From Zygnema circumcarinatum SAG 698-1b (Eukaryota > Plantae > Zygnematophyceae): a DNA stretch of 64,000 bases. Shown here one piece after another: positions 47,601 through 61,090 of the stretch. The position numbers and the translations under genes were made by a program. Within the stretch, counting starts at the first letter, position 1. Every line of letters begins with the position of its first letter. Below the pieces are notes generated by a model that saw only the letters and a list, made by a program, of their open reading frames with translations, made no database searches and was not told where the DNA came from. The DNA lies in assembly GCA_037447605.1 (NCBI GenBank), contig CM074805.1, positions 4,559,361 through 4,623,360 on the forward strand, written 5' to 3'.

Positions 47601-49108
47601 AGGGAGCTTGCTCGCTATGGCGGTACCATAGGGGGCTGCCGGACGTCTGGCAGTGGCGCCCGGAGAAGGAAAACACTTGTTCGAGTAGATGTAGCGTAGG
47701 GATCGAACAACTGTTGATTCTGTGTCTTCAGGAACTGCTGGTAGATTCGATCTTGTCTTGGATCGGTAGCGTTCATGTAATGTGGTCGTACATGTCGATT
47801 GCCTCTCTCTTGATCGTACGAATTCGCTCACGCCCCGCTTCCCAACAAGGCACGGGCATCTGGCTGGTGGGTTGTCGGCGCAGCTCCGCGATCGAGGTGG
47901 AATCGCTTCTACGTGATGGCCTTCTTGGAACCCTTGGAACGCCGGAAAAAGTCAGGCAAATGCCGGTCGTATTTGCCATGCTTTCGCTCGGTGAATTCAA
48001 GCGACGCTCATCGCTGTAGCATTCTATGTAGCGAAGTCGGTCTACCACCGTGATCGGATCTGAAATCCAACGTTGTCTGAAAGCTTGCTTGAATGTGTCC
48101 CTTGTCAGGGTGGCGACGACATCTACTTTGTGCCAGTTTCGGGACAGCTTCCAGTTGACTGCCTCGCCTTCCAGCGCTCCAAGGGCCAGCTTGATCCACT
48201 GGTCTTCCTTCAGGTCTGCTTGCGCTGCCTTCTCCTCAAGATGTCTCAGCCAGGCTTCTGCATCTTCCTGCTTGCCGGTGAAGCCTCTTGTGATGATGCC
48301 CGTGGTATCCCTCACCTCACTCTTTTCAGGAATCATTGCTATCAGTTTGGTCATCATCTCTTCCATCTTGCTGGGAAACTCAGATCTGACTCGTGTGCTT
48401 CTCTGCAGGTTGGTGCGAAAGCTGGAGGGTCCTTGCGATCGTCCTGCCCTTGCCCCTGAAGCCGCTCGCCTGGGGCTGCCGGATGGGTAAGTTGTGAACG
48501 CCGGAGGTGAGGGTGTCTTCTGAGGAATCCCTTGCTCTGCTGTAGGACTGCGTGCCGCTGCTGTGCTTGAAGGGACTCCTGGTGCTGTAGTTATCCGACT
48601 GAGATCTCGTGGGTTCTGTCTCTGGTGGGCCGCGGTGGGGACCTCAGGTTCGAACGGCACTCCTCTCCTCACGGCATCTGCGGCCGTGACAGCGACTGGG
48701 CAGGCTGCAAGCTTGATCATCCGGCGTGCATATTGCCAGCGAATTTTATGGCCATCACTGCCTAGATGAAGTCGCTGCAGCTCTTCAATCGACTCGATCT
48801 GCNNNNNNNNNNATCTTGAGTCTTAGCAGTGACAGTCTCTGATTGGCCAACTGCCCCTTGAGAGGCCTGACTGACTACGTGGAGCCTTCGGATAGGTCAA
48901 CTGATGACAATCGGCGGCATCTTGCGGCGCTTCCGAGTGCGCCTTGCTGGATGGTGTGCCGTTCCGTGGGCCGCCAACGCATGGCGCCGCCTTCTCTTAA
49001 TCTCCGTTGGCAGCTCCTGGATTCCGCTGATCCGCGACACGGAAGAGGCCTATGTCAAGTACAACTGAACGGACGCGGATCCGCCGAACGCAGCTCCGTT
49101 ACGCTACA
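41686..49108 (-). mobile_element. Ty3/gypsy element C (no chromodomain seen), degenerate or error-rich
   Basis: LTRs 41686-42515 and 48813-49108 (gapped); TSD GGGG; gag 48720-47800; CTFCQITGHDARVC; PR AMIDTGA; RT/RH (LKSFLGLTSFYRRFI, YSPTEGEAAAILWAL, IIRTDH); frameshifted integrase (YTKWVEVHA, TDNGT). No clear PPT recognised. Confidence 0.85.
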
Positions 49109-49560
49109 GGGGTCCTCGTATTTACCACCCCAAAGAATGCGTCCTCAATATTTTCGCCCCAATTTTGCCGAAACCACTTTTTTGTACGGTAACTTGTGTT
49201 AGCCGTACTATCCGTATTGTTCGTACTGTCCGGCGCTCGCTCTTCTCCCCGTCTTCTTGACTTCGATACGATACGATACGATATAATACGGTCGATACGA
49301 TACGAAACTCCCCGATACGGTACTATCCGTACTAGCCGTACGAGCTGTAGTAGCCGTTACGGGCTCGAATTTAAACTCTCCGAATTTTCCCGCCCTTGCC
49401 GCCGCGAGAGGCGCTCGCTTCTCTCCTCTTCTTCTTGGCTTTGGCTTTGTCTTACTGCTGCAAGCTCATCAACACACACAGTACACACACACACACACAG
49501 ATCACACAGTACATCCACCATCAAAAGAAGGCGGCACGATCTCTTTTATGCGCTTATACC

Positions 49561-50253
49561 ATGGAGGAGGAAAATCCAATAGTGAAGGAGGTAGCACCAC
49601 CACCACCACCAAGCACCACCGCGGAGGTGCTGAGGGAGATACGAACGCTCCTGCCACCTGGAAGCGACACTCGATGTCGAACAGCTCAGGTTGCGCTGGC
49701 TTACATTCGTAATCTTCTCTCTACTTCATCTCGTCATCGATTTCAAGTGTACGACCCTCCAGGTGATGGCCACTGTGTCCTTCGGTGCGTAGTAGCTTCC
49801 CAATTCGGGTTTGAGAGGAGCAAAGACACGGACACTATTTGGGAATTGAGGTCGAAAATCAGCGAAGTTCTTTGTGCCAATGTGGAGTCGTTCCTTGATG
49901 ATGGAAGCTTAGACATCATGTTGCTGGAGACAGATCCGTCTCTGGTTATTGATAACTTAGACGCGGATGAGAAGAAAATGTTATGGGGCTTATATTGTGA
50001 CGAGTTCAAGGAGCAGTACCCGGACCACCAACCTCTGTATGCAGGCCATGCATCACTTCTTGCCATTAAGGACTTCATTTTCCCAGAGAAGAGGATAGTG
50101 TTTGTGAGTACACAGATTAAAGGCGGTCAATCAGAAGATTCTTCATATCTTATTGGCTCTACAATGGTAGTGGCAGATGAATCAGAGTTGGCTGATGACT
50201 GTAATCTAGTACTTTTACTTTATATAGACTCCATTCAGCATGCGTGTCTTATC
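49561..50253 (+). CDS. OTU-like cysteine protease domain ORF inside the pogo element
   Basis: YDPPGDGHCVLRCVVASQFG..WELRSKISEVL..N..SF ... YAGHASLLAI..RIVFV ... LLLYIDSIQHAC resembles the OTU Cys box, Gly box and His box. Ends at an N gap. Confidence 0.6.
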
Positions 50254-50263
50254 NNNNNNNNNN

Positions 50264-53200
50264 CGACTGACGAGAATGGTGGAGCAGTCGAGCCACAAAG
50301 CACTTCTCATCAAGAACAAACGAAGACTGTCCCTCAAACTCTTCCAGGCATTTGGTCATATAGTGCGAAGAACACCTTCTTCAATGGCACCATCAGACGT
50401 CGGAGAGAAAGGAAGGCGAAGGTGGTGCTTTCACATGAGATGAAGCTGGGCCTTCTTAACGATATCAGCAGATATGGTGTGTCAACTCTCTCTGTCGCAA
50501 AGAAGTACAATGTCACTCGACGCACTGTGCAGAATATGTTGAAGCGTAAAGACAAGATCATCGAAGCAACTCTGAATCCGAGAACGACAAAACGCAAACA
50601 CATTCTTGTGAAGCTGAAGTTTCCTACCCTTGATGCGTTGGTCCAAGCATTTGTCCAGCAACTCCGTTGTAACGGCTGAGATCTGACTCCTTCAGCCTAC
50701 GCGGAATCACACACCAGCACTCAGAGTTCAGCGGGAGAGAGAGAGCAAGAGAGAGAGCTTCAGAGGGTGGCGCAGCCCTGGGCAGGGGTGCAACCGAATG
50801 CCGGTACGTTGGTTGGGTGACGACAATCACCCACGCCCCTTTACGCTTCCCCCGTTGAACCTCCTACCAGCATGGAGGATTGGAAGCAGGGCTGTCCAAT
50901 GGCGATCGCCACGTAGTTCCTCTCTCACCCGAATGCGGGTCGAGGTGTGGCTAACGTAATTTAACGCCAATGCATTTCGCTGGGCGTACGCCAGCGACAA
51001 AGGGCGCCAGCTGTACATCGCTGCACCTGCTGGATCCCCGCTACGCGCTGGGAGCCCGGACAGCTACTGTCCGTACCACCCTGCAAATTCGTGACTCGTA
51101 CCTGACGTAACGGCTGGCCTGGGATTCGGCCGCGTGGCCCGAGATACCCACGGACCGTGATTGGTCCCGCGGGTGCCTAATCCCTAATCCTCCCCTTTTT
51201 AAGCCGAGGAGGGGACCTTGGTTGCAGCGGGCCACCGCGACTACGCGGTGCTCCCCACGCGGTGGTAGAACCGCCTACGGCTTCGAACCTAGGGACCGCG
51301 GGTCCTATAGGGTATCCGATGCCCTAACCGTTAGGTACCGCATTGGATGGAAACATAAAGCCACGCCGGGCCCTAAGTAACCCTTCCCCCTCAGCGATCA
51401 GAATATGCCGCCATTACTCCCCTCAGGAGAATGTGAACTTCCTGCTCACGCGGTAGTAAAGGTACCGTAGTTTCAACGCACGCCGGGCCAACTCTACGCG
51501 GATAACCGGAGGGCTCACCGATAATCCCGGCCAAGTCCCCGCCCGAGTTGCGCGAAGACGACTCAGGGACCCCCCGTGCCGCCCTCGCCCGCGCTCCGAC
51601 GGCCTGCGCCTCCCAGTAAAGGCTGATGAGCTCCTGGCAATTGGTTAAGTTGCCCTCGGCTTCCCATGTGCTATGTTCAACCCCATAGCCCAACCATTTC
51701 ACGAGGTATTCGTGACGGGAAGATCGACCTTTTCTCACAAGACGGTGGGCTTGAATGGTTTCAACTTCGTACTCAAGTTCACCCTCAAGCTCCACTGGTG
51801 GGGGAGGTGGCTGGATCCTCCCATCGCTACGGTAGACCTTTAGCAAACCCACATGAAAGACCGGATGCACCTTCATGTGGGATGGTAAATCCAACCTGTA
51901 GTTTAATATTTATCGATTCGCCTGACCCCGAAGGTCCGACGGTGGCCACAGCCTACGGTTCGCCATGTTTCTTTGAGTCCTGCTCGCATTTTAGAACACC
52001 TCATTGCCTTCGTTGAAGGTGAGTTGGGTACGGTGACGGTCAGCATAGGCCTTTTGTCGCGACTGGGCCGCTAGCAGGGTCTGCCGTGCCCTCTGCAGCG
52101 CCTCAGACATTAGTCGGACAAAAGATCTGACTGCGGGAGGTTGAGTCCCATCAGTCCCTCTCAGCTTCCAAGGATCGGGGTTTCTGTGGACGCCCATGTT
52201 CCACGGATCAGGGGGCTGATCCCTTGGTTGCAGGGGATTTAGAGGATGCTGGCCAAAGTTCAAGAAGAAAGGGGTGGTACCAATGGACTCCTGGAAAGCA
52301 TTATTGATGGCGTACTCTGCCACTGGGAGCAGTTCGTCCCACCCATCCGGGGTAGGTCCCACATAATGCCGGAGGTAATCCTCCAGGATCCTGTTCACCC
52401 GTTCCGTCTGGCCATCGGTTTGCGGGTGGAAAGCTGTACTCAACGCCTGCTTGGTCCCAACGATTTTGAGCACTTCCGTCCAAAAATGGCCGGTGAATCG
52501 TGGATCACGGTCAGACACAATTTCTGACTGAAGACCATGCTGGCTCCACACTTTGTCAACATACAACCGTGCAATCTCGTCGGCCCCAGCGGTCTTAGTA
52601 GTTGGTGCAAAATGCACCATCTTGCTGAGCCGATCGACAAAGACGAGGAGTCATGCCCCCGAGGTGTCACAAGAAGATTTGTGATCAAGTCCATACCCAC
52701 ACTGTCCCATTTCCGAAAAGGAGGTGTGAGGGGTTGCAGCCGGCCAGGGATCCTGCCAGTGAGGGGTTTGTTTCGTTGACAAGTTGGACAAGCGAGTACA
52801 TACGNNNNNNNNNNAAATTAGTCAAGGGGGTAACCAGTTTACTAAACCCTTGGATGAACTTACGAAAATAATTCGCAAAGCCCAGAAAAGACCTCAACTG
52901 ATGCAAGTCAGTCGGTGGCGCCCAAGTTTCTACCGCTGAAACTTTGGCAGGATCAGGCCGAAGGCCTTGATCATTCAAGATATGCCCAAGATAGAGCAAC
53001 TCACGTTGCATGAAGTGACACTTCTTCCTCTTGGCATAAAACTGGTGTTTCCTCAGGGTCTCAAACACTTTCCGAACGTGTTCAAGATGTTCCTCCTCCG
53101 TCTTACTGAAGACAAGGATATCATCGAGGTAAACCAAAACAAACTCGTCCATGCCGATGAACATCTCGTTCATGACAGCCTGGAAAGTTGCCGGAGCATT

Positions 53201-56200
53201 AGTCAATCCAAAGGGCAACACCTTATATTGGAAATGACCAATCGGCGTCCGGAACGCAGTTTTTGGCACATCAGCTTCCGTGACGCGGATTTGATGATAC
53301 CCCTGAGCAAGATCAAGTGATGTGAACACTTTGGCGCCGTGAAGACGATCCAACAGATCATCGATACGTGGTAAAGCAAATCGATTCTTTACGGTGATCT
53401 TGTTGAGTGCGCGATAATCAATGCACATCCTCAACGAGCCATCTTTCTTGCCAACAAACAAGATGGGCGCCCCAAAAGGGCTTTGGCTGGGTTCTATCCA
53501 GCCCTTGTCACGTAAAGTTGCCAACTGCTTACGCATTTCCTCGGTTTCCTTCGGACTTAACCGATAGATCGGCCGCCAAGGCGGCTTTTGCTCAGGCTCA
53601 AGAGGGATTATGTGCCCCACACCTCTCATGGTGGCAACCCTCTGAAGGTCATCGCGGAAGACATCCTCACTCCATCCACACAAACAGGTCGATCGGGATA
53701 ATACCGGTGAAAGCACACATCCGCGGGAGGCTGTGATCTTCATTCCCGAAGACCGCGCTGGCCGCCATGACATGCACCATGAACAAGGTGCATCCTCCTT
53801 AATCAAGCGGCCAACCGCATAATCGGAAAGCACGCATAAGGATGTAAGCAGTCGCTGGACAACAGAGGATGTGGCTCGCCAGGTGCGTAAGTCACTGTCA
53901 CCACCGTGAATGCAATGTGGGGACGTAAAAGTCCATTTGTGCCTTGACCATGGTTAACCAAGCACTCCCCAAAATAACATCAGTACCAGGGGCCAGTTGT
54001 GTTAGAAGACACTTGACTGCCCCAGAGTAGGATTGGAGCTTGATCTTGAGTGTGACGCACTGCAGATCTCGCTCTTAAGGCCCATCCCCAAAGTAACACT
54101 TTCCTAATGGGGATCTGTCAATCTCTAAAACTTTCCTCGGTGAACGCAGTAATCAACAAAGCTAGCATTCCGCCTCAAAGATCGGTGCGTAAGAACCGGC
54201 CGGGTGGGCTACTTGCCGTAATCTCGACGGCGGTCAGCGGCACGCATGGGCAAGGTGGAACATAGATCGCACTATATGCGAAGGTTGAGGACGAGCCGTC
54301 CTCCACACCAATGTGTAGGGTGAGCCAACCAGCAAGCTGGTGGATCCTTCCATCTCTTGCACCAACGTGTGGCCCTTTCCTCAACTGTGTCACCAACCGC
54401 CAAGTGGCGCTGGGAAAGGTGCGAACTGCCATGTGCTGAGGAACCAGCACATGCAGCGCAAGGATATGGGAGGTGTTTCCCATGACATGCAAAACATCCA
54501 TGGCACATTGCATGAGAACATCATCGCCCATGACATTGAGGATAAAGACATGCCAATCACCATTCATCACTACATCCATAAACCCAAAAGGAGTCACTAC
54601 AGTGGCAGGGGAGAGGGAAATGGAAACAGGGAGTGCATCACACACAAAGAGATCGTGCATTCCCAAAGGCCTGCCAACCAATTTAAGAATGTCCGAGGTT
54701 CTAAGAAACAAATGTCCCCTAGACCTGGCAGCAGTCTCCATCCCTCCCCCTAACCTAGCATGTCCACCAGCAACGACCCCTAAGCTGCTGGTGGGTTGGG
54801 GTTTTCCGGCCCCTTGCCCTTCCTGTCCTTGGCGTTCAGAGGGCAATCCCGGGCCTTGTGCCCCTCCTTGCGGCAGCGGAAACACTTGTTCTCCCGCTGC
54901 ATCTTCTCCATTTCCTCTGGAGTCAACTTCTGCGGCCGTGCAGTGGGTGGGCGGGCAGCCACTTCCGGCTGCTTCCGCTTGTTCTTTCCTGCCAGTTTGG
55001 CAGGAGCTGAGGGTCCCGCCTTCCACGACCCTGTCACGTCGCCCGACCTCTGCTGGGGTCGGGAAGGGCCTGCATCGCCTGCAGGGGCGGTGTCCAACTG
55101 AATGGCTGCATCAAAGTACAGCTCAGAGTCAGCGGGGTCCCACGGTTTCAGAGTCCGTGGGTTAGTCCTTAGCTGCTTCCTCAGGTGTGGCTTCAAGCCA
55201 TTCCTGAAGTGGAAAAAGAACTCAGCCTGTCCAGGCTTGTGAGTGGTGATTTGAGGCACCACTTGTCGCAGGTCTCGCAGAAACCGCTTGACAGTGCCGG
55301 TTTGGACCATGTTCTGAAACTTATCCCGGGCCTCCAAGCCGGGATCCAAGGCCCCAAAGTGTTTGATAAGTTCATCTCTGAAGTTATCCCAATCGTCCCC
55401 AATCTCATCAGAGAGGCGCTCATACACACGGTATGCGGCTCCTCTAAGTGCCGGGTAAGCAAAGCTTACCCACTGGAGGGGGGGACAGTTGGTCGCAAGA
55501 AGGTAACCCTTCGTTTGACCCAACCACTGCTCAATCGAGCAGTCCGTGGTAGGATGTTCGCCCCAAAAGGAAAGAGGGGCCACTTTGGCCCGATTCCGTC
55601 GGGCATCCTCAGTAGGTTGCGGGGGAGCAGTCCGAGGACTCGACCCTCCTCCTCAAAGCAGCTGGAATGGGCGGCCTTCTATTGCTGGTGCAGGAGCCCG
55701 CCACCCCTCGCGGGGTGATCGCGGGAAAACCAGGGGGTCCGGACCGCCGCCGCCTCGCAGCCGGGTTAGCGCCGGGACAGTGATTTTACCACCGAGTGGT
55801 TTGTTTCAACCCTTCCCCAGATTCGGCCGCAGACGCACGCCTCTACGTACCGGGGTTCGGGCATACCTTCCTCGATCCCGCTCGGGAGCCGGCCCAAAGC
55901 GTTTCGCAACCTTATTTGAGCGGTTCACCAAGTGACCGCGGAGTCGGCGTCGCCCACCTGCTCGCATATGTGCTATGGGAGTGAGGCCGCCTTCTTTACA
56001 TCCGCCCAGTTCGTCGACCCCTTCTTCATCTTCGGTGACGCCGCCCACCGCGGATGCAATTCTGTCATGGGATCGGGCGTGATCTGCGGCCGGCGGCTCC
56101 GTGACGCTGGAGGGTGGGTAGCAGCCACCGATGCATCTTTGTCATCTCGGGTTTCCTGTGGACTGGCCTCCTGCCAGGGACGGGCCGCTAGCCCCTGAAG

Positions 56201-59200
56201 TTCTTCCTCTATCACCTCGGCCCCTGCGGGACAGGAGGTGGCGCCCCGGTGGGCCCCGGGGTCCCTCCCCGCCCCGACGGTGAGTGGCCTACCAGCCAAT
56301 CCGCGCGGTGTTCCCCGTCAAAGAGAAGGCCGCAACGCTCATACCAATGTAACAAATAGATCCACCTTCCTGTACCACGCCGAATCACACACCAAGATTC
56401 TAGCTCAATGGGAGAGAGAGCAAGAGAGAGAGCTTCGCTGAGAGCAGGCGTCAAGGGGTGCAACCCAAATGCACAAGTGGAGCAGGGATCATGCAGTCAC
56501 CCCACGCCTTCCCCCGCTTGAACCTCTCCTAACAAAGATGGAGGATTGGAAGCAAGGCCGCCCAATGGTAGATCACACGGTTCTCAATTCAATGGGTCGA
56601 GGTAATAACGTGACGAACGCTTCATCAGATTTCATGCTGGGCTGCCGCCGCGACAAGGTAGCGCCGCCGCATATCGCTGCACTGCTGGATCCTACGCTGC
56701 CAGCGGCGCTGTTTGATCAGCCACTTCGTCTGCATCAACGGGTGTACCGTAATTGTACCTACCAACGGCGACCTGGCAGTGGGATCCGCCAGTTCAGATC
56801 CACCGGCGATCGGATTTGTAGCGAACGCTACGGGGCCACTCCACGTGAGGTGTACTTCCTGGTGGGCGCCGCCTCCGCCCTAGTACTCTCACCGCGCTGG
56901 CCGATGCCAAGGCGCCGGGACCACCGGGACCGGAAGGGGTCTCCGGGATCAACCCGCGGCGTTGTAGTGGTCTGGCGCGCGCTGCATAACAGACATATAC
57001 GTGATGTCAGCAAGTCAGCCGATGTGGTCGAGGGATCATGGAATCCCTAATACATCTTCTTTAGCTGCTTCTTGGGAACGTGAATCGCCGCCCTGCATAA
57101 TTACGGTTACCGTTGAGTAATGACGGATCGCTGGCCGCGACTCGGGCACGCTGCTGTAGGGATCCGGACTGCAGCCCGACAGACGATGGCGGCGCGTTGC
57201 AAGTCAGGGCGCCAGCGAATGCGAAGTAGTAGCATTCAGACAGCAGGCCACCTCTCACCCATCCGAAGTCGTGAGAGGACACGCGGGTGCTTGCCATTGA
57301 CAGCCTCGCCTAACTCTCCATGCCTGCAGGAGGTTCAACGGGAAAGTCAGAGGCTGTGGTGATCATTGCCACCAAATCTAACGTGGTATCGCATAATGGG
57401 TTGCACGCCCATACCGGGGTCGCCCCTCACCTCGGAAGCTCTCTCGAATCCTCTGTCCTCAACTCGCTTTGCCAATGCCGTTGAGTGCACCCGCCGCCAG
57501 ACCGGGGCAGGCGCCATTGTTACGTGATTGGTCCCTTGGTGCCTGCAATCCTCAATCTCCCTTAAGCCGAGAGGGACCTTTGGTTGCCAAAAGGGCGACC
57601 GCGACTATGGTGCCCCCACGCCAGGAACCGCCTACTTGCTCAACCTAGACCTCCGTGGTCCTATAGGGTATCCGATGCCCTAACCGTTAGGTACTGCATT
57701 GGATGGAAACATAAAGCCACGCCGGGCCCTAAGTAACCCTTCCCCCCTTGGGGTGACTGTAGCGTTTCGCTACATCCGTGATCAAGGGTTCCCTATCACT
57801 TCCCAAATTATTAGAGACTTTGCGCTTGTAATGGCTACAAACATGGGGATTAGCGAGGATGAATTCAAAGCTAGTGAGCCATGGGCTAGAAATTTTCTCA
57901 AAGAAACGGGTTTGTGCTCGAAATTTCACCGAGAAGTCAGCTCGCATTGGTGCACGGTACGGTTCCGCCCAATAAAGGATCTAAGGAAACGTTTGGAAGG
58001 ATATCCTTTGGAGAATATATACAATATGGACGAAACAGGGTTATTTTACTGGTTGCTTCCCAAGAAAACGTACGTTACAATGCGTGAGGATAGAAAAACT
58101 ATCAGAGGAACAAAGCAGATGAGGTCCAAGGATAGGATATCTTTATACTGTGCGACTAATGCGACTGATACTCACAAAATACCGCTCGGTGTAATCGGCA
58201 AATCAAAGAATCCAACAGTGTTTGGTAAAGGGAAGGAGGCTATCTTACGCGATTTGGGCTTCGCCTATTTTAGCCAGGCGAATGCGTGGTCCGATGGTTC
58301 TACTATGACAAGGTGGCTTCGAGAGGTCTTCCTTCCGGCTATAAAGACAAAGAAAAAGAGCGGCAGGATAGCACTTTTACTAGACAACTGTGGTCCTCAC
58401 AATATGAAAGCAAAGGGAGAGAAGACCATAACGTCGAGCGATAGCCTGTCATGTGAAAAGCTGGCCTCCGTGGAGAATGTCGATATTCTTATGCTACCTC
58501 CGAATGTGACATCCCTTCATCAACCAATGGACCAAGGAGTAATCTCCATGACAAAGAAGAACTATCGATATCGTTTACTGATGGAGTGGAGCAAGCTATT
58601 CATGGATCGAAAGCTGTTGGCTGCGCTCTCCAAAGGGAAGAAGAAAGGATCCAGGGGCCTTTGTGAAGGTGCTCAGCCTCATTTGCTGGATGCTTTGAGC
58701 ATTCTTTCCGCCGTTTGGAGAGATTCTGTTACTACGGAGGCTATTGCCAGGTGTTGGATCAAGGCAGACATCCTTCCAGCTTCCTACAATGCTCAATTGA
58801 TAAGTAAACATGGAAAGCAAGGGCGGACATATCGACGAGTGATTCCTGATGATGACGGCAACAACGTAGACCCACTCGAAGATAGCACAGAGGAGATAGT
58901 CAATGAGGTTGAAGAAGTGCAAAACTGTGAAGAGGAGAAGGATATCGTGGAGCAACTGTGTTCAGTCTTTGCGGACATCGACTTGGCCTTCGGTGGATCT
59001 ACTGTGGACTCGCTTGTGTCTCAGGGTCTTGACGAAGATGTCATTGACTGCATGGCGTCCATAAAGTCAGCTGAGTCTATTGAGAAGCTATTGCATTCAT
59101 GGGTGACGATTGAAGACAACCAAGATGTAAGAGAGGCGATCGTGGAAGACTTTGTCGGAGACTTAGAGCGACAAGCACTCAAGAACTTACCATCGCAGGA

Positions 59201-59582
59201 CCACGAGAATGATGCACAGAATCAAGAGCAACAATCAATGCTTAATGGCAACGAGGAAGACGAGGAGGAAGGTGAAGAACTAAACGAAAAAGGAAGCGAC
59301 CTCCAACATCAAACAGGCTCTTTTATTGCCGCCGCCAACGCCACTGAGCAGCTTCAACTTCCTGACTTGGAGGAGGCTCTCTCTACCCTGAACGATTTTG
59401 ATACCATGCTGAACAACATGGGAGGTCACGGGTCGAAGGCAATGCTTCATCTTAGCCAGGTAAAGCGAGACTTCATTGGTGCTTGGCGAACGGTGAAGAG
59501 GGCGCAGACAAAGGCGAAGCCATCTCGACAAACTTTTGTTCAAGACTTCTTTACTGTCACAGGAGGAGGAGGAGAGGCGTGA
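50264..59582 (+). pseudogene. pogo transposase (CENP-B-type HTHs + DDE_1), split by element D
   Basis: RKAKVVLSHEMKL..VAKKYNVTRRTVQNMLK..KFPTLDALV..QQLR|DQGFPITSQII..FKASEPWARNF; MDETGLF, LLLDN, LPPNVTSLHQPMDQG. Removing 50668-57774 and one TCCGT restores the frame. Confidence 0.92.
50668..57774 (-). mobile_element. Ty3/gypsy chromovirus, element D (same family as A), inserted in the transposase
   Basis: TSD TCCGT; LTRs 50668 to about 51413 and 56348-57774; degenerate PBS TGGTATGAGC at about 56337-56346; gag core nearly identical to A; RT with VYLDD; integrase and chromodomain. Confidence 0.9.
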
Positions 59583-59761: not shown

Positions 59762-59850
59762 CGCCTTAGCATTTACTAAGGCAGCAAGACTGCCTCAGTA
59801 GCTGAGGCAGCTACTGAGGCAGTCTTGCTGCCTTAGTAAATGCTAAGGCG
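59762..59850. repeat. Perfect 43-bp inverted repeat with a 3-nt loop
   Basis: CGCCTTAGCATTTACTAAGGCAGCAAGACTGCCTCAGTAGCTG-AGG-exact reverse complement. Confidence 0.95.
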
Positions 59851-60389
59851 TGAGCTGCTGCTTCCATCTGTTTTTCGGTTATGTGTATGCGGTTCACCAG
59901 CTGATCTTGGCTCATGTAAGCCACCATAAGGTCGGTTGCCACATTTAGCATCTCGCAAACAACGTACCTGCTGTACAAGTACAAGTGCAATTACAGTACA
60001 GCATATCAAGTAACGTTTGCTGTGTGTCGTGTGTGGAAATCGCCCAGTCTGCACGCAAGGTGCAAAGGAGAGAGAGAGCGAGCGAGAGAGAGAGAACGGC
60101 AGCCCTCGGCAAGGGTGCAACTAACTGCCGGTACGTTGGTTGGATGACGACAGTATGTACGACAGTATATGCGTCACGATACGTCACGATACGTCACGAT
60201 ACGATACGATGCTAAATGATACAGTACGATACGGTACGATATGGTACGGTACGATACGTACGGTTCAACATGAACTCTAACATAATACCGCCCGTCTATT
60301 CGTAACACGAACCTTATATATGCAAATTTAATATTTTCGCCTCATTTTGCCCGGAACCAGGGTGGAAAATATGAGGACCCCCTACTGTA

Positions 60390-60713
60390 ACGCAAAACTC
60401 ACCTAATCTCCCCGCCCGTGCCGCCGTAAGTGGCGCTCTCACTTCTCCCCTTCTTCTTGGCTTAGATACGATACGATACGATATTGATCGATACGGTACT
60501 ATCCGTACTAGCCGTACTAGCCATACTTGACGATACGGTACGATGCGGTACGATACGACATCAAATGATACGATACGATATGTACCGACATACATGAACT
60601 CTAACAAAATTCCGCTCGCCTATTATTGGTAACTCGGACCTTCTATTTGCCAAAAACAATATTTTCGCCCGGTATTTGCCGAAACCATGGCGAAAATATG
60701 ACGAGGACCCCTG
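60390..60713 (+). mobile_element. Right part of a pogo-family MITE that received the large pogo insertion
   Basis: Continues the MITE consensus CGCAAAACTCACCTAATCTCCCCGC seen at 18704; ends GAGGACCCCTG-TA. Confidence 0.65.
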
Positions 60714-61090
60714 TAGAATCGTATGGCATATTTGTACGGAGTTAATGTACGGAACTGTACGGACGAATTCTCACCTCTCTAGCTGTTTAGCAATTGGTGT
60801 GAATCCCAAGACCCTTTGATCGAATGGTTCATGTTGTTCATCATGTTTTGCTTTTGGCGGCGAGGTTTTACGAAGGACATGTATAAGACTACTGTTTTCT
60901 GTGTCTTTGTCAACCGGAGCTTTGAGGGAGGCATGGGATGCTTGAGCTCCTGTTCAATTCTGAAATAATTTTTTTGTGGATATATGTGCTGTTCCTTGTA
61001 TGATTGAGACTCTTGAAAATATCTAGGAAAGAAAACGCTTCTTAGGATGAGATAGAAGATACTGAGAGAGAAATAGGGCCCAGTTCTACA

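Follow-up and report, generated by a model that had tools for sequence, protein, structure and literature searches.

In a 64,000-nucleotide stretch of the genome of the alga Zygnema circumcarinatum SAG 698-1b (assembly GCA_037447605.1, contig CM074805.1, positions 4,559,361 to 4,623,360 of the forward strand; hereafter the window), a DNA transposon of the pogo superfamily carries, ahead of its transposase, an open reading frame (ORF) that resembles a deubiquitinase of the ovarian tumor (OTU) class. On balance, we favor the reading that the transposase gene of this element has its 5′ part at positions 49561-50667 of the window and opens with an OTU-like domain of approximately 230 residues. The coding pieces on which the reading is based, together with the assembly gap between the first two, are as follows; HTH stands for helix-turn-helix.

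49561-50253, forward strand: OTU-like ORF piece, 231 codons from the ATG at 49561, open to the gap at 50254 (from the sequence and the ORF list)
50254-50263, no strand: assembly gap of 10 N (a placeholder length), directly 3′ of the strand that contains His227
50266-50667, forward strand: post-gap piece, 134 codons that comprise an acidic/polar linker, an NGG/A motif, a basic RRRRERKAK and a CENP-B_N-type HTH and end in ...VQQLR
57780-59582, forward strand: remainder of the transposase, 600 codons and a stop, with HTH_Tnp_Tc5, DDE_1 and a C-terminal tail of acidic character; the reading continues here with DQGFPIT...

An OTU-like domain ahead of the transposase

The OTU-like ORF begins at ATG 49561, and no further Met occurs 5′ of this codon within its open frame. 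It contains the sequence PGDGHCVLRCV, in which GDGHC occupies residues 68-72 and the loop Asp69-Gly-His-Cys72 ends on the putative catalytic cysteine (TGT, 49774-49776). Further on are YAGHASLLAI (residues 160-169, with YAG at 160-162) and, near the end of the ORF, LLYIDSIQHACLI, in which His227 (CAT, 50239-50241) is surrounded by QHACLI. Residues from approximately 24 to 53 form a conserved N-terminal helix region. A preliminary description of this locus had reported an ORF of about 230 residues with Cys, YAG and His motifs, located ahead of the HTH region and inside the terminal inverted repeats (TIRs) of the element, and both the sequence and the ORF list confirm it.

A HMMER search of 1.84 billion representatives with the OTU-like piece returned one homologue and no other relative. 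This homologue, P0001, has 253 residues and shares 53% identity with the piece in residues 9-189 (E = 3.9e-41); DGHCVLRC is retained without change in both proteins, as are many other positions. It is a stand-alone gene model from a contig of 1.4 kb and is possibly truncated. We combined the two sequences into a family profile (alignment A1), and when the piece and A1 served as queries in word-index protein searches, P0001 was again the only protein found. Because this homologue was found at such an E value, we consider the OTU-like ORF, on the evidence of sequence conservation, to be the real coding sequence of a protein family and not a chance ORF. No locus was confirmed when A1 was used to scan viral and metagenome contigs, and tblastn of both pieces against the window detected no second copy.

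For the comparison with known OTU domains, we used a reference set of 24 natural OTU domains from viral contigs, which were picked by the pattern DGNCLFRA and of which 18 pass the Pfam OTU model. In the ESM Atlas, 24 of the 30 clusters nearest to the whole piece are PF02338 OTU clusters (top score 0.94, 184 shared features), and 22 of the 30 nearest are OTU clusters when the Cys loop is left out (residues 78-231; top score 0.91). The hhalign comparison of A1 with the 24 viral OTU domains gave a probability of 64.5% and an E value of 6.3e-5 over 100 columns, and the single sequence scored 28.8, compared with 12.5 ± 2.6 (maximum 22.4) in 100 shuffles. Moreover, when the ORF was aligned with the OTU set by MAFFT without supervision, GDGHC fell on the DGNC column that is invariant in the 24 domains, and Cys72, YAG and His227 were aligned with the Cys, WG and His positions of the OTU domains, respectively. 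The Leu-Arg helix of the ORF also lies in the matching OTU column, and the four landmarks are collinear. We therefore consider it quite likely that the domain has the OTU fold, which is that of the papain-like cysteine proteases of clan CA.

A number of results weigh against this reading, and they concern the fold, the catalytic residues and the fusion. Even with the limit relaxed to E <= 10, the Pfam OTU and otubain families (PF02338 and PF10275) match neither P0001 nor the piece nor the core of the piece, and scans of both window pieces and P0001 with Pfam and NCBIfam identified no protease family. Sequence searches of the PDB with the single sequence and with the profile gave no significant match, and the best OTU match (E = 1.1) is confined to the Cys loop. 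Without the Cys loop, the single sequence scores 11.1 in hhalign, which is at the level of its shuffles (10.9 ± 2.2), and therefore most of the profile signal comes from one motif. The AlphaFold2 (AF2) model obtained from A1 alone, that is, from two sequences, is unusable (pLDDT 35). The confident model (pLDDT 78, pTM 0.73) is circular, since its input, alignment A4, consisted of the OTU-like ORF aligned with the viral OTU set. The same circularity applies to the details of the A4 model, in which Cys72 is at the N-terminus of a helix and His227 is in the last strand, and for which the top structures in the fold search are all OTU (OTUD1, Foldseek E = 1.8e-5; Z 12.6 and a root-mean-square deviation of 2.5 Å over 132 residues). 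Although His227 stands in the OTU His column of the MAFFT alignment and in the last predicted strand of the A4 model, it is followed by Ala-Cys and not by the usual aromatic residue and Asp, Asn or Glu. P0001 diverges ahead of the His strand and is not alignable there. The OTU domain occurs in none of the 120 transposase relatives listed among a total of 224. Finally, a stop, a start or an intron may hide in the assembly gap.

The OTU-like character claimed in the preliminary description is thus supported by the Atlas neighbors, by the hhalign match to the OTU set and by the register of Cys, WG and His, but it finds no match in the curated hidden Markov models (HMMs). The comparison by AF2 and Foldseek that the same description had proposed does return OTU structures as the best matches, but the confident model was built with OTU sequences and the family-only model has the pLDDT of 35 given above. 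One element of the predictions is common to both AF2 runs: the helix positions and the C-terminal strands are shared, and the helix of Cys72 starts at residue 72 with A4 and at residue 71 with A1. Judged from these comparisons of sequence, the putative OTU lineage represented here is too divergent for Pfam.

The 224 relatives of the transposase are mostly metagenomic, and the best are 33-41% identical. Among the relatives listed, a DG.C loop N-terminal to the HTH was not found; the sole DG.C is at residue 243 of P0036, well inside the transposase. The N-terminal extensions of P0015, P0016, P0024, P0025, P0028 and P0031 resemble neither A1 nor the OTU set, and against the OTU profile, the extensions of pogo transposases other than the present one reach scores of only 9 to 18. 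Because no OTU domain occurs in the relatives listed, we regard the domain as a lineage-specific acquisition.

In several of the closest relatives (P0015, P0016, P0024 and P0028), the N-terminal extension is rich in Cys (e.g., CAAKHLCK...C..C), differs from the OTU-like domain and is not recognized by Pfam. The pogo clade around these four proteins seems prone to gain N-terminal accessory domains.

The junction with the transposase and competing explanations

The OTU-like ORF and the HTH-containing piece are separated by the 10-N gap. In the nominal frame, the 10 N are followed by the two bases CG, and translation resumes at 50266 for 134 codons; beyond ...VQQLR (50667), three more codons precede a stop. 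The window contains 13 gaps, 12 of 10 N and one of 30 N. A length of 10 N is a placeholder, and therefore the nominal in-frame reading across the gap carries no weight. The preliminary description had called the ORF nominally in frame with the transposase, which is correct for the 10 N as written but meaningless as evidence, given that the gap length is conventional.

The sequences on the two sides of the gap are more informative. Up to the gap, only the frame of the OTU-like ORF itself is open, and no stop occurs between His227 and the gap. Of the two frames that are open past it, one enters the HTH. Neither an ATG nor a stop occurs in the first 58 codons of this HTH-bound frame, and when the first 54 post-gap codons are shuffled, an in-frame stop is absent in only 5.6% of cases. 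The first in-frame Met of the post-gap piece is codon 59, inside the region of the first helix of the HTH, and the alignment places the starts of the transposase relatives 3 to 20 residues ahead of their HTH. Because the post-gap piece lacks an ATG ahead of its HTH, the start of the transposase would be either ATG 49561 or a codon hidden in the gap. The GC contents of the three pogo coding pieces are 46.7-46.9%, compared with 56.3% in the retroelement that is nested in this copy. Because there is no stop before the gap and no ATG in the 58 codons after it, we believe that, given an OTU fold, the OTU-like domain and the transposase are probably parts of one polypeptide.

Two genes in place of one is an alternative to this fusion, although we consider it unlikely. 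Under this explanation, the OTU-like ORF would serve as an accessory ORF1 of its own, with a transposase that begins within the gap or is linked to the ORF only by splicing. The unknown length of the gap leaves room for such a structure, and the closest pogo transposases do begin just before the HTH, without a domain of this type. In Helitron-like elements, moreover, the OTU is often separate or fragmentary (PMC11417382). P0001 would provide a further precedent as a gene model of 253 residues that stands alone, but the short contig on which it is located suggests that it could be incomplete. Against two genes are the absence of a stop ahead of the gap, the run of codons behind it that is free of both ATG and stop, the linker of approximately 45 residues that none of the relatives has as its N-terminus, and the identical base composition of the two parts. 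The fold itself could also be a different one, in which case the ORF would encode a lineage-specific N-terminal domain with a chance D-G-x-C. The missing match to curated HMMs, the loss of the profile signal without the Cys loop and the poor family-only AF2 model argue for this explanation. However, the Atlas neighbors remain OTU without the Cys loop, and the Cys loop, the LR helix, the aromatic-Gly helix and the strand with its His remain collinear in an alignment that was not supervised. The agreement of the two AF2 runs in the helix positions and in the placement of Cys72 at a helix start, and the low scores of the other pogo extensions against the same OTU profile, further reduce the probability of a different fold, which we regard as rather improbable.

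Even if the fold is that of an OTU, the domain may not be a deubiquitinase. It could be catalytically dead or re-purposed as a ubiquitin-binding or protein-interaction module, as would fit the Ala-Cys that follows His227 in place of an aromatic and an acidic or amide residue, the lack of conservation of the His strand in P0001 and a divergence that is too great for Pfam. However, the Asp-Gly-x-Cys loop is invariant between proteins that are only 53% identical, and Cys and His both stand in catalytic columns. Furthermore, some active OTUs, such as A20, have the third residue of the triad elsewhere. We assign a low probability to the loss of activity. A protease that processes its own polypeptide has even less in its favor, and we consider it quite improbable. 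Such an enzyme, with or without deubiquitinase activity, would cut, for example, after the Gly-Gly of NGG/A and free a transposase of normal size. A Gly-Gly followed by a small residue is indeed present 5 to 6 codons past the gap in a polar linker, and many of the viral OTU domains that we fetched are located inside large polyproteins. Viral proteases of the OTU type, such as those of the polyproteins of tymoviruses, arteriviruses and nairoviruses, have dual roles. However, chance alone would be expected to yield one GG in a linker this short, and we know of no transposon OTU that has been shown to cleave itself.

The pogo element and its nested chromovirus

The identification of the element as a pogo transposon, which the preliminary description had made, was upheld by the domains of its transposase and by its TA-flanked TIRs. 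In the ORF 57699-59582, Pfam recognizes HTH_Tnp_Tc5 (E = 1.6e-8) and DDE_1 (PF03184; E = 5.4e-32). The triad of the piece that starts at 57780 consists of D83, D201 and D250, located in NMDETG, LLLDNC and PMDQGV, and 49 residues separate the last two. In the post-gap piece, the Pfam matches to HTH_23 (E = 9.6e-4) and CENP-B_N (E = 3.6e-3) both fall short of the cut-off, and the piece aligns with the N-terminal HTH or CENP-B_N region of pogo transposases (BLASTP, approximately 1e-4). The bipartite DNA-binding region of the pogo type is therefore present, its first HTH being sub-threshold but aligned and its second being HTH_Tnp_Tc5. The ends of the element and the insertion within it are the following.

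49105-49130 (TA at 49105-49106), forward strand: left TIR with its TA duplication, CAGGGGTCCTCGTATTTACCACCC, which aligns with the two copies at the right end when these are reverse-complemented
60360-60384 (TA at 60383-60384), reverse strand: inner right TIR followed by TA, reverse complement GGGGGTCCTCATATTTTCCACCC, the best match to the left TIR
60697-60715 (TA at 60714-60715), reverse strand: outer right TIR with TA, which closes the second tandem copy, of approximately 325 bp, of the right subterminal region
50668-57774, reverse strand: Ty3/gypsy chromovirus of approximately 7.1 kb, which splits the transposase gene at 50667/50668

At the left end, TA and CAGGGGTCCTCG occupy 49105-49119; this pattern occurs once per strand, and 0.03 matches are expected by chance. 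The copy at 60360-60384 is the probable right end of the element. We class the element as an autonomous-type DNA transposon of the pogo superfamily, with a length of approximately 4.2 to 4.5 kb without the nested retroelement.

The subterminal regions have several further features. The right end is duplicated in tandem with a period of approximately 325 bp (60199-60393 and 60523-60717), which creates two TIR-like ends. The flanks outside the left TIR (49097-49106) and the inner right TIR (60383-60392) mirror each other, with CGTTAC..TA on one side and TA..GTAACG on the other. To the right of the inner end, the sequence (60395-60540) is similar, in direct orientation, to part of the left subterminal region (49232-49441). 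Short repeats of the GATACG type with a 10-nucleotide period occur in both subterminal regions (49256-49332, 60159-60266 and 60461-60590) and may be binding sites of the transposase. Approximately 180 bp 3′ of the transposase stop and within the element, a perfect inverted repeat of 43 nucleotides with a 3-nucleotide loop (59762-59850) may represent a foldback insertion or a structural signal.

The transposase gene is interrupted by the chromovirus, an insertion absent from the preliminary description. Its long terminal repeats (LTRs) extend over approximately 50668-51418 and 56348-57774 (TGTAAC...CTACA). A target site duplication (TSD) of 5 bp, TCCGT, is present at 50663-50667 and 57775-57779. 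Pfam identifies a gag with zf-CCHC and RVT_1 among the chromovirus ORFs, an integrase-like ORF (51991-52620) and a chromodomain-like ORF (51391-51894) were recognized by eye, and Pfam assigns no family to the putative integrase ORF. A sequence resembling a primer-binding site, TTGGTATGAGCG, adjoins the inner edge of the right LTR (56348). When 50668-57779, which is the insertion and one copy of the TSD, is left out, ...VQQLR is joined to DQGFPIT... in frame and at the exact spacing of the family. Because the frame and the spacing are restored and the TSD is found on both sides, the two halves belong to one element that received one insertion. Because the chromovirus splits the transposase gene, this pogo copy is, by its structure, dead.

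The possibility that the two halves come from different pogo copies was also considered, since approximately 12 residues on each side share alignment columns, and it was rejected. The three codons that precede the stop (CNG) are LTR sequence, namely the TGTAAC start that is also found at 56348, and the 28 bases before 57775 end with CTACA as the LTR terminus does; TCCGT is present on both sides, and the spacing is restored.

The two LTRs of the chromovirus are unequal, with approximately 1427 bp at 56348-57774 and 751 bp at 50668-51418. The longer one contains an inverted LTR segment (57316-57457 vs. 50739-50877), and an identity of 92% is limited to the last 105 bp (51286-51390 vs. 57642-57746). 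The chromovirus LTR (50741-50825) and the 3′ subterminal pogo sequence (60068-60152) have in common a module of 85 nucleotides with 78% identity, which may be a small mobile unit or a captured fragment.

Transposons that carry ubiquitin-pathway proteases

The combination of a transposase with a captured protease of the ubiquitin pathway is already known, and what would be new is the pogo host. The closest parallel is provided by the Ginger1 DNA transposons of Hydra, Aplysia and aphid, in which an integrase-like DDE transposase is fused to an OTU or Ulp1 domain (PMC2836005). The preliminary description had overlooked this precedent. As in Ginger1, the gene of a cut-and-paste DDE transposase is associated here with a cysteine protease of the OTU type. 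However, the OTU of Ginger1 is C-terminal, is recognized by pfam02338 and accompanies a transposase similar to gypsy integrases, whereas the OTU-like domain of the Zygnema element is N-terminal, invisible to Pfam and (probably) joined to a transposase of pogo type, within the IS630-Tc1-mariner group. A role of the transposon OTU and Ulp1 domains in ubiquitin-dependent repair was suggested in the same work, where it was not tested (PMC2836005). In Helitron-like elements, an OTU is found upstream of the Rep/Helicase and has been captured repeatedly and independently (PMC11417382), which agrees with the statement in the preliminary description that OTUs are accessory domains in some Helitrons. 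The position of the captured OTU upstream of the transposition enzyme is therefore similar, but Helitrons are rolling-circle elements without a DDE transposase, and their OTU is often fragmentary and was judged to be non-essential (PMC11417382). Mutator-like elements (KI-MULEs), including those of plants, carry Ulp1 (Peptidase_C48) according to work cited in PMC2836005. They resemble the present element in placing a modifier protease of the papain-like clan beside a DNA transposase, and they differ in that the protease is Ulp1, a SUMO protease, and not an OTU, and in that Mutator is not a member of the pogo superfamily.

Within the pogo superfamily, a survey of Tigger, pogoR, Lemi, Passer, Mover and Fot described transposon copies with DNA-binding motifs only and no protease, and it found KRAB, zinc-finger and dimerization domains just in domesticated pogo genes (PMC7386202). 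The Zygnema element has the traits of the superfamily, namely a CENP-B_N-type HTH, HTH_Tnp_Tc5, the D,D,D triad of DDE_1, a TA duplication and TIRs. The spacing of 49 residues between its last two Asp residues fits only the widest published range, which is that of pogoR, DD29-59D/E (PMC7386202). Our literature searches found no paper on a pairing of OTU with pogo or Tigger, and the remark in the preliminary description that OTUs are not known in pogo elements agrees with these searches.

What the OTU domain would do in transposition can only be inferred. The product of an intact copy would be a single polypeptide with the order OTU-HTH-HTH-DDE, in which the OTU domain would remove ubiquitin or a ubiquitin-like modifier in cis. 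One target could be the transposase itself, which would be spared proteasomal turnover, and another could be chromatin or repair factors at the site of excision or insertion; the OTU and Ulp1 domains that Ginger1, Helitron and Mutator elements carry have been proposed to act in the same way. The preliminary description had likewise suggested protection of the transposase from turnover or the editing of chromatin ubiquitin. We tentatively suggest, as a possibility that we would not call probable, that a pogo family in a green-lineage alga has an active, highly divergent OTU deubiquitinase fused to the N-terminus of its transposase, and that this enzyme acts in cis by stabilizing the transposase, by editing ubiquitin at the break or by cleaving itself from the transposase at the Gly-Gly of the linker.

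Ubiquitin- and SUMO-pathway proteases have been captured repeatedly by unrelated DNA transposons, Ulp1 by Mutator and OTU by Ginger1 and Helitrons. To our knowledge, the benefit of such proteases to their transposon has never been demonstrated. The value of the present locus in this respect is limited, as the copy is dead and its junction is unread. An OTU that is invisible to Pfam and has one relative among the 1.84 billion representatives will be missed by domain scans of transposons. If the reading proposed here is true, the IS630-Tc1-mariner group would gain its first member with a deubiquitinase, and DNA transposons would have captured an OTU independently for the third time. The capture would then have occurred in the Tc1/mariner/pogo group, which is the best studied and the most easily assayed, so that a direct test of transposition with and without the catalytic Cys would be practical.

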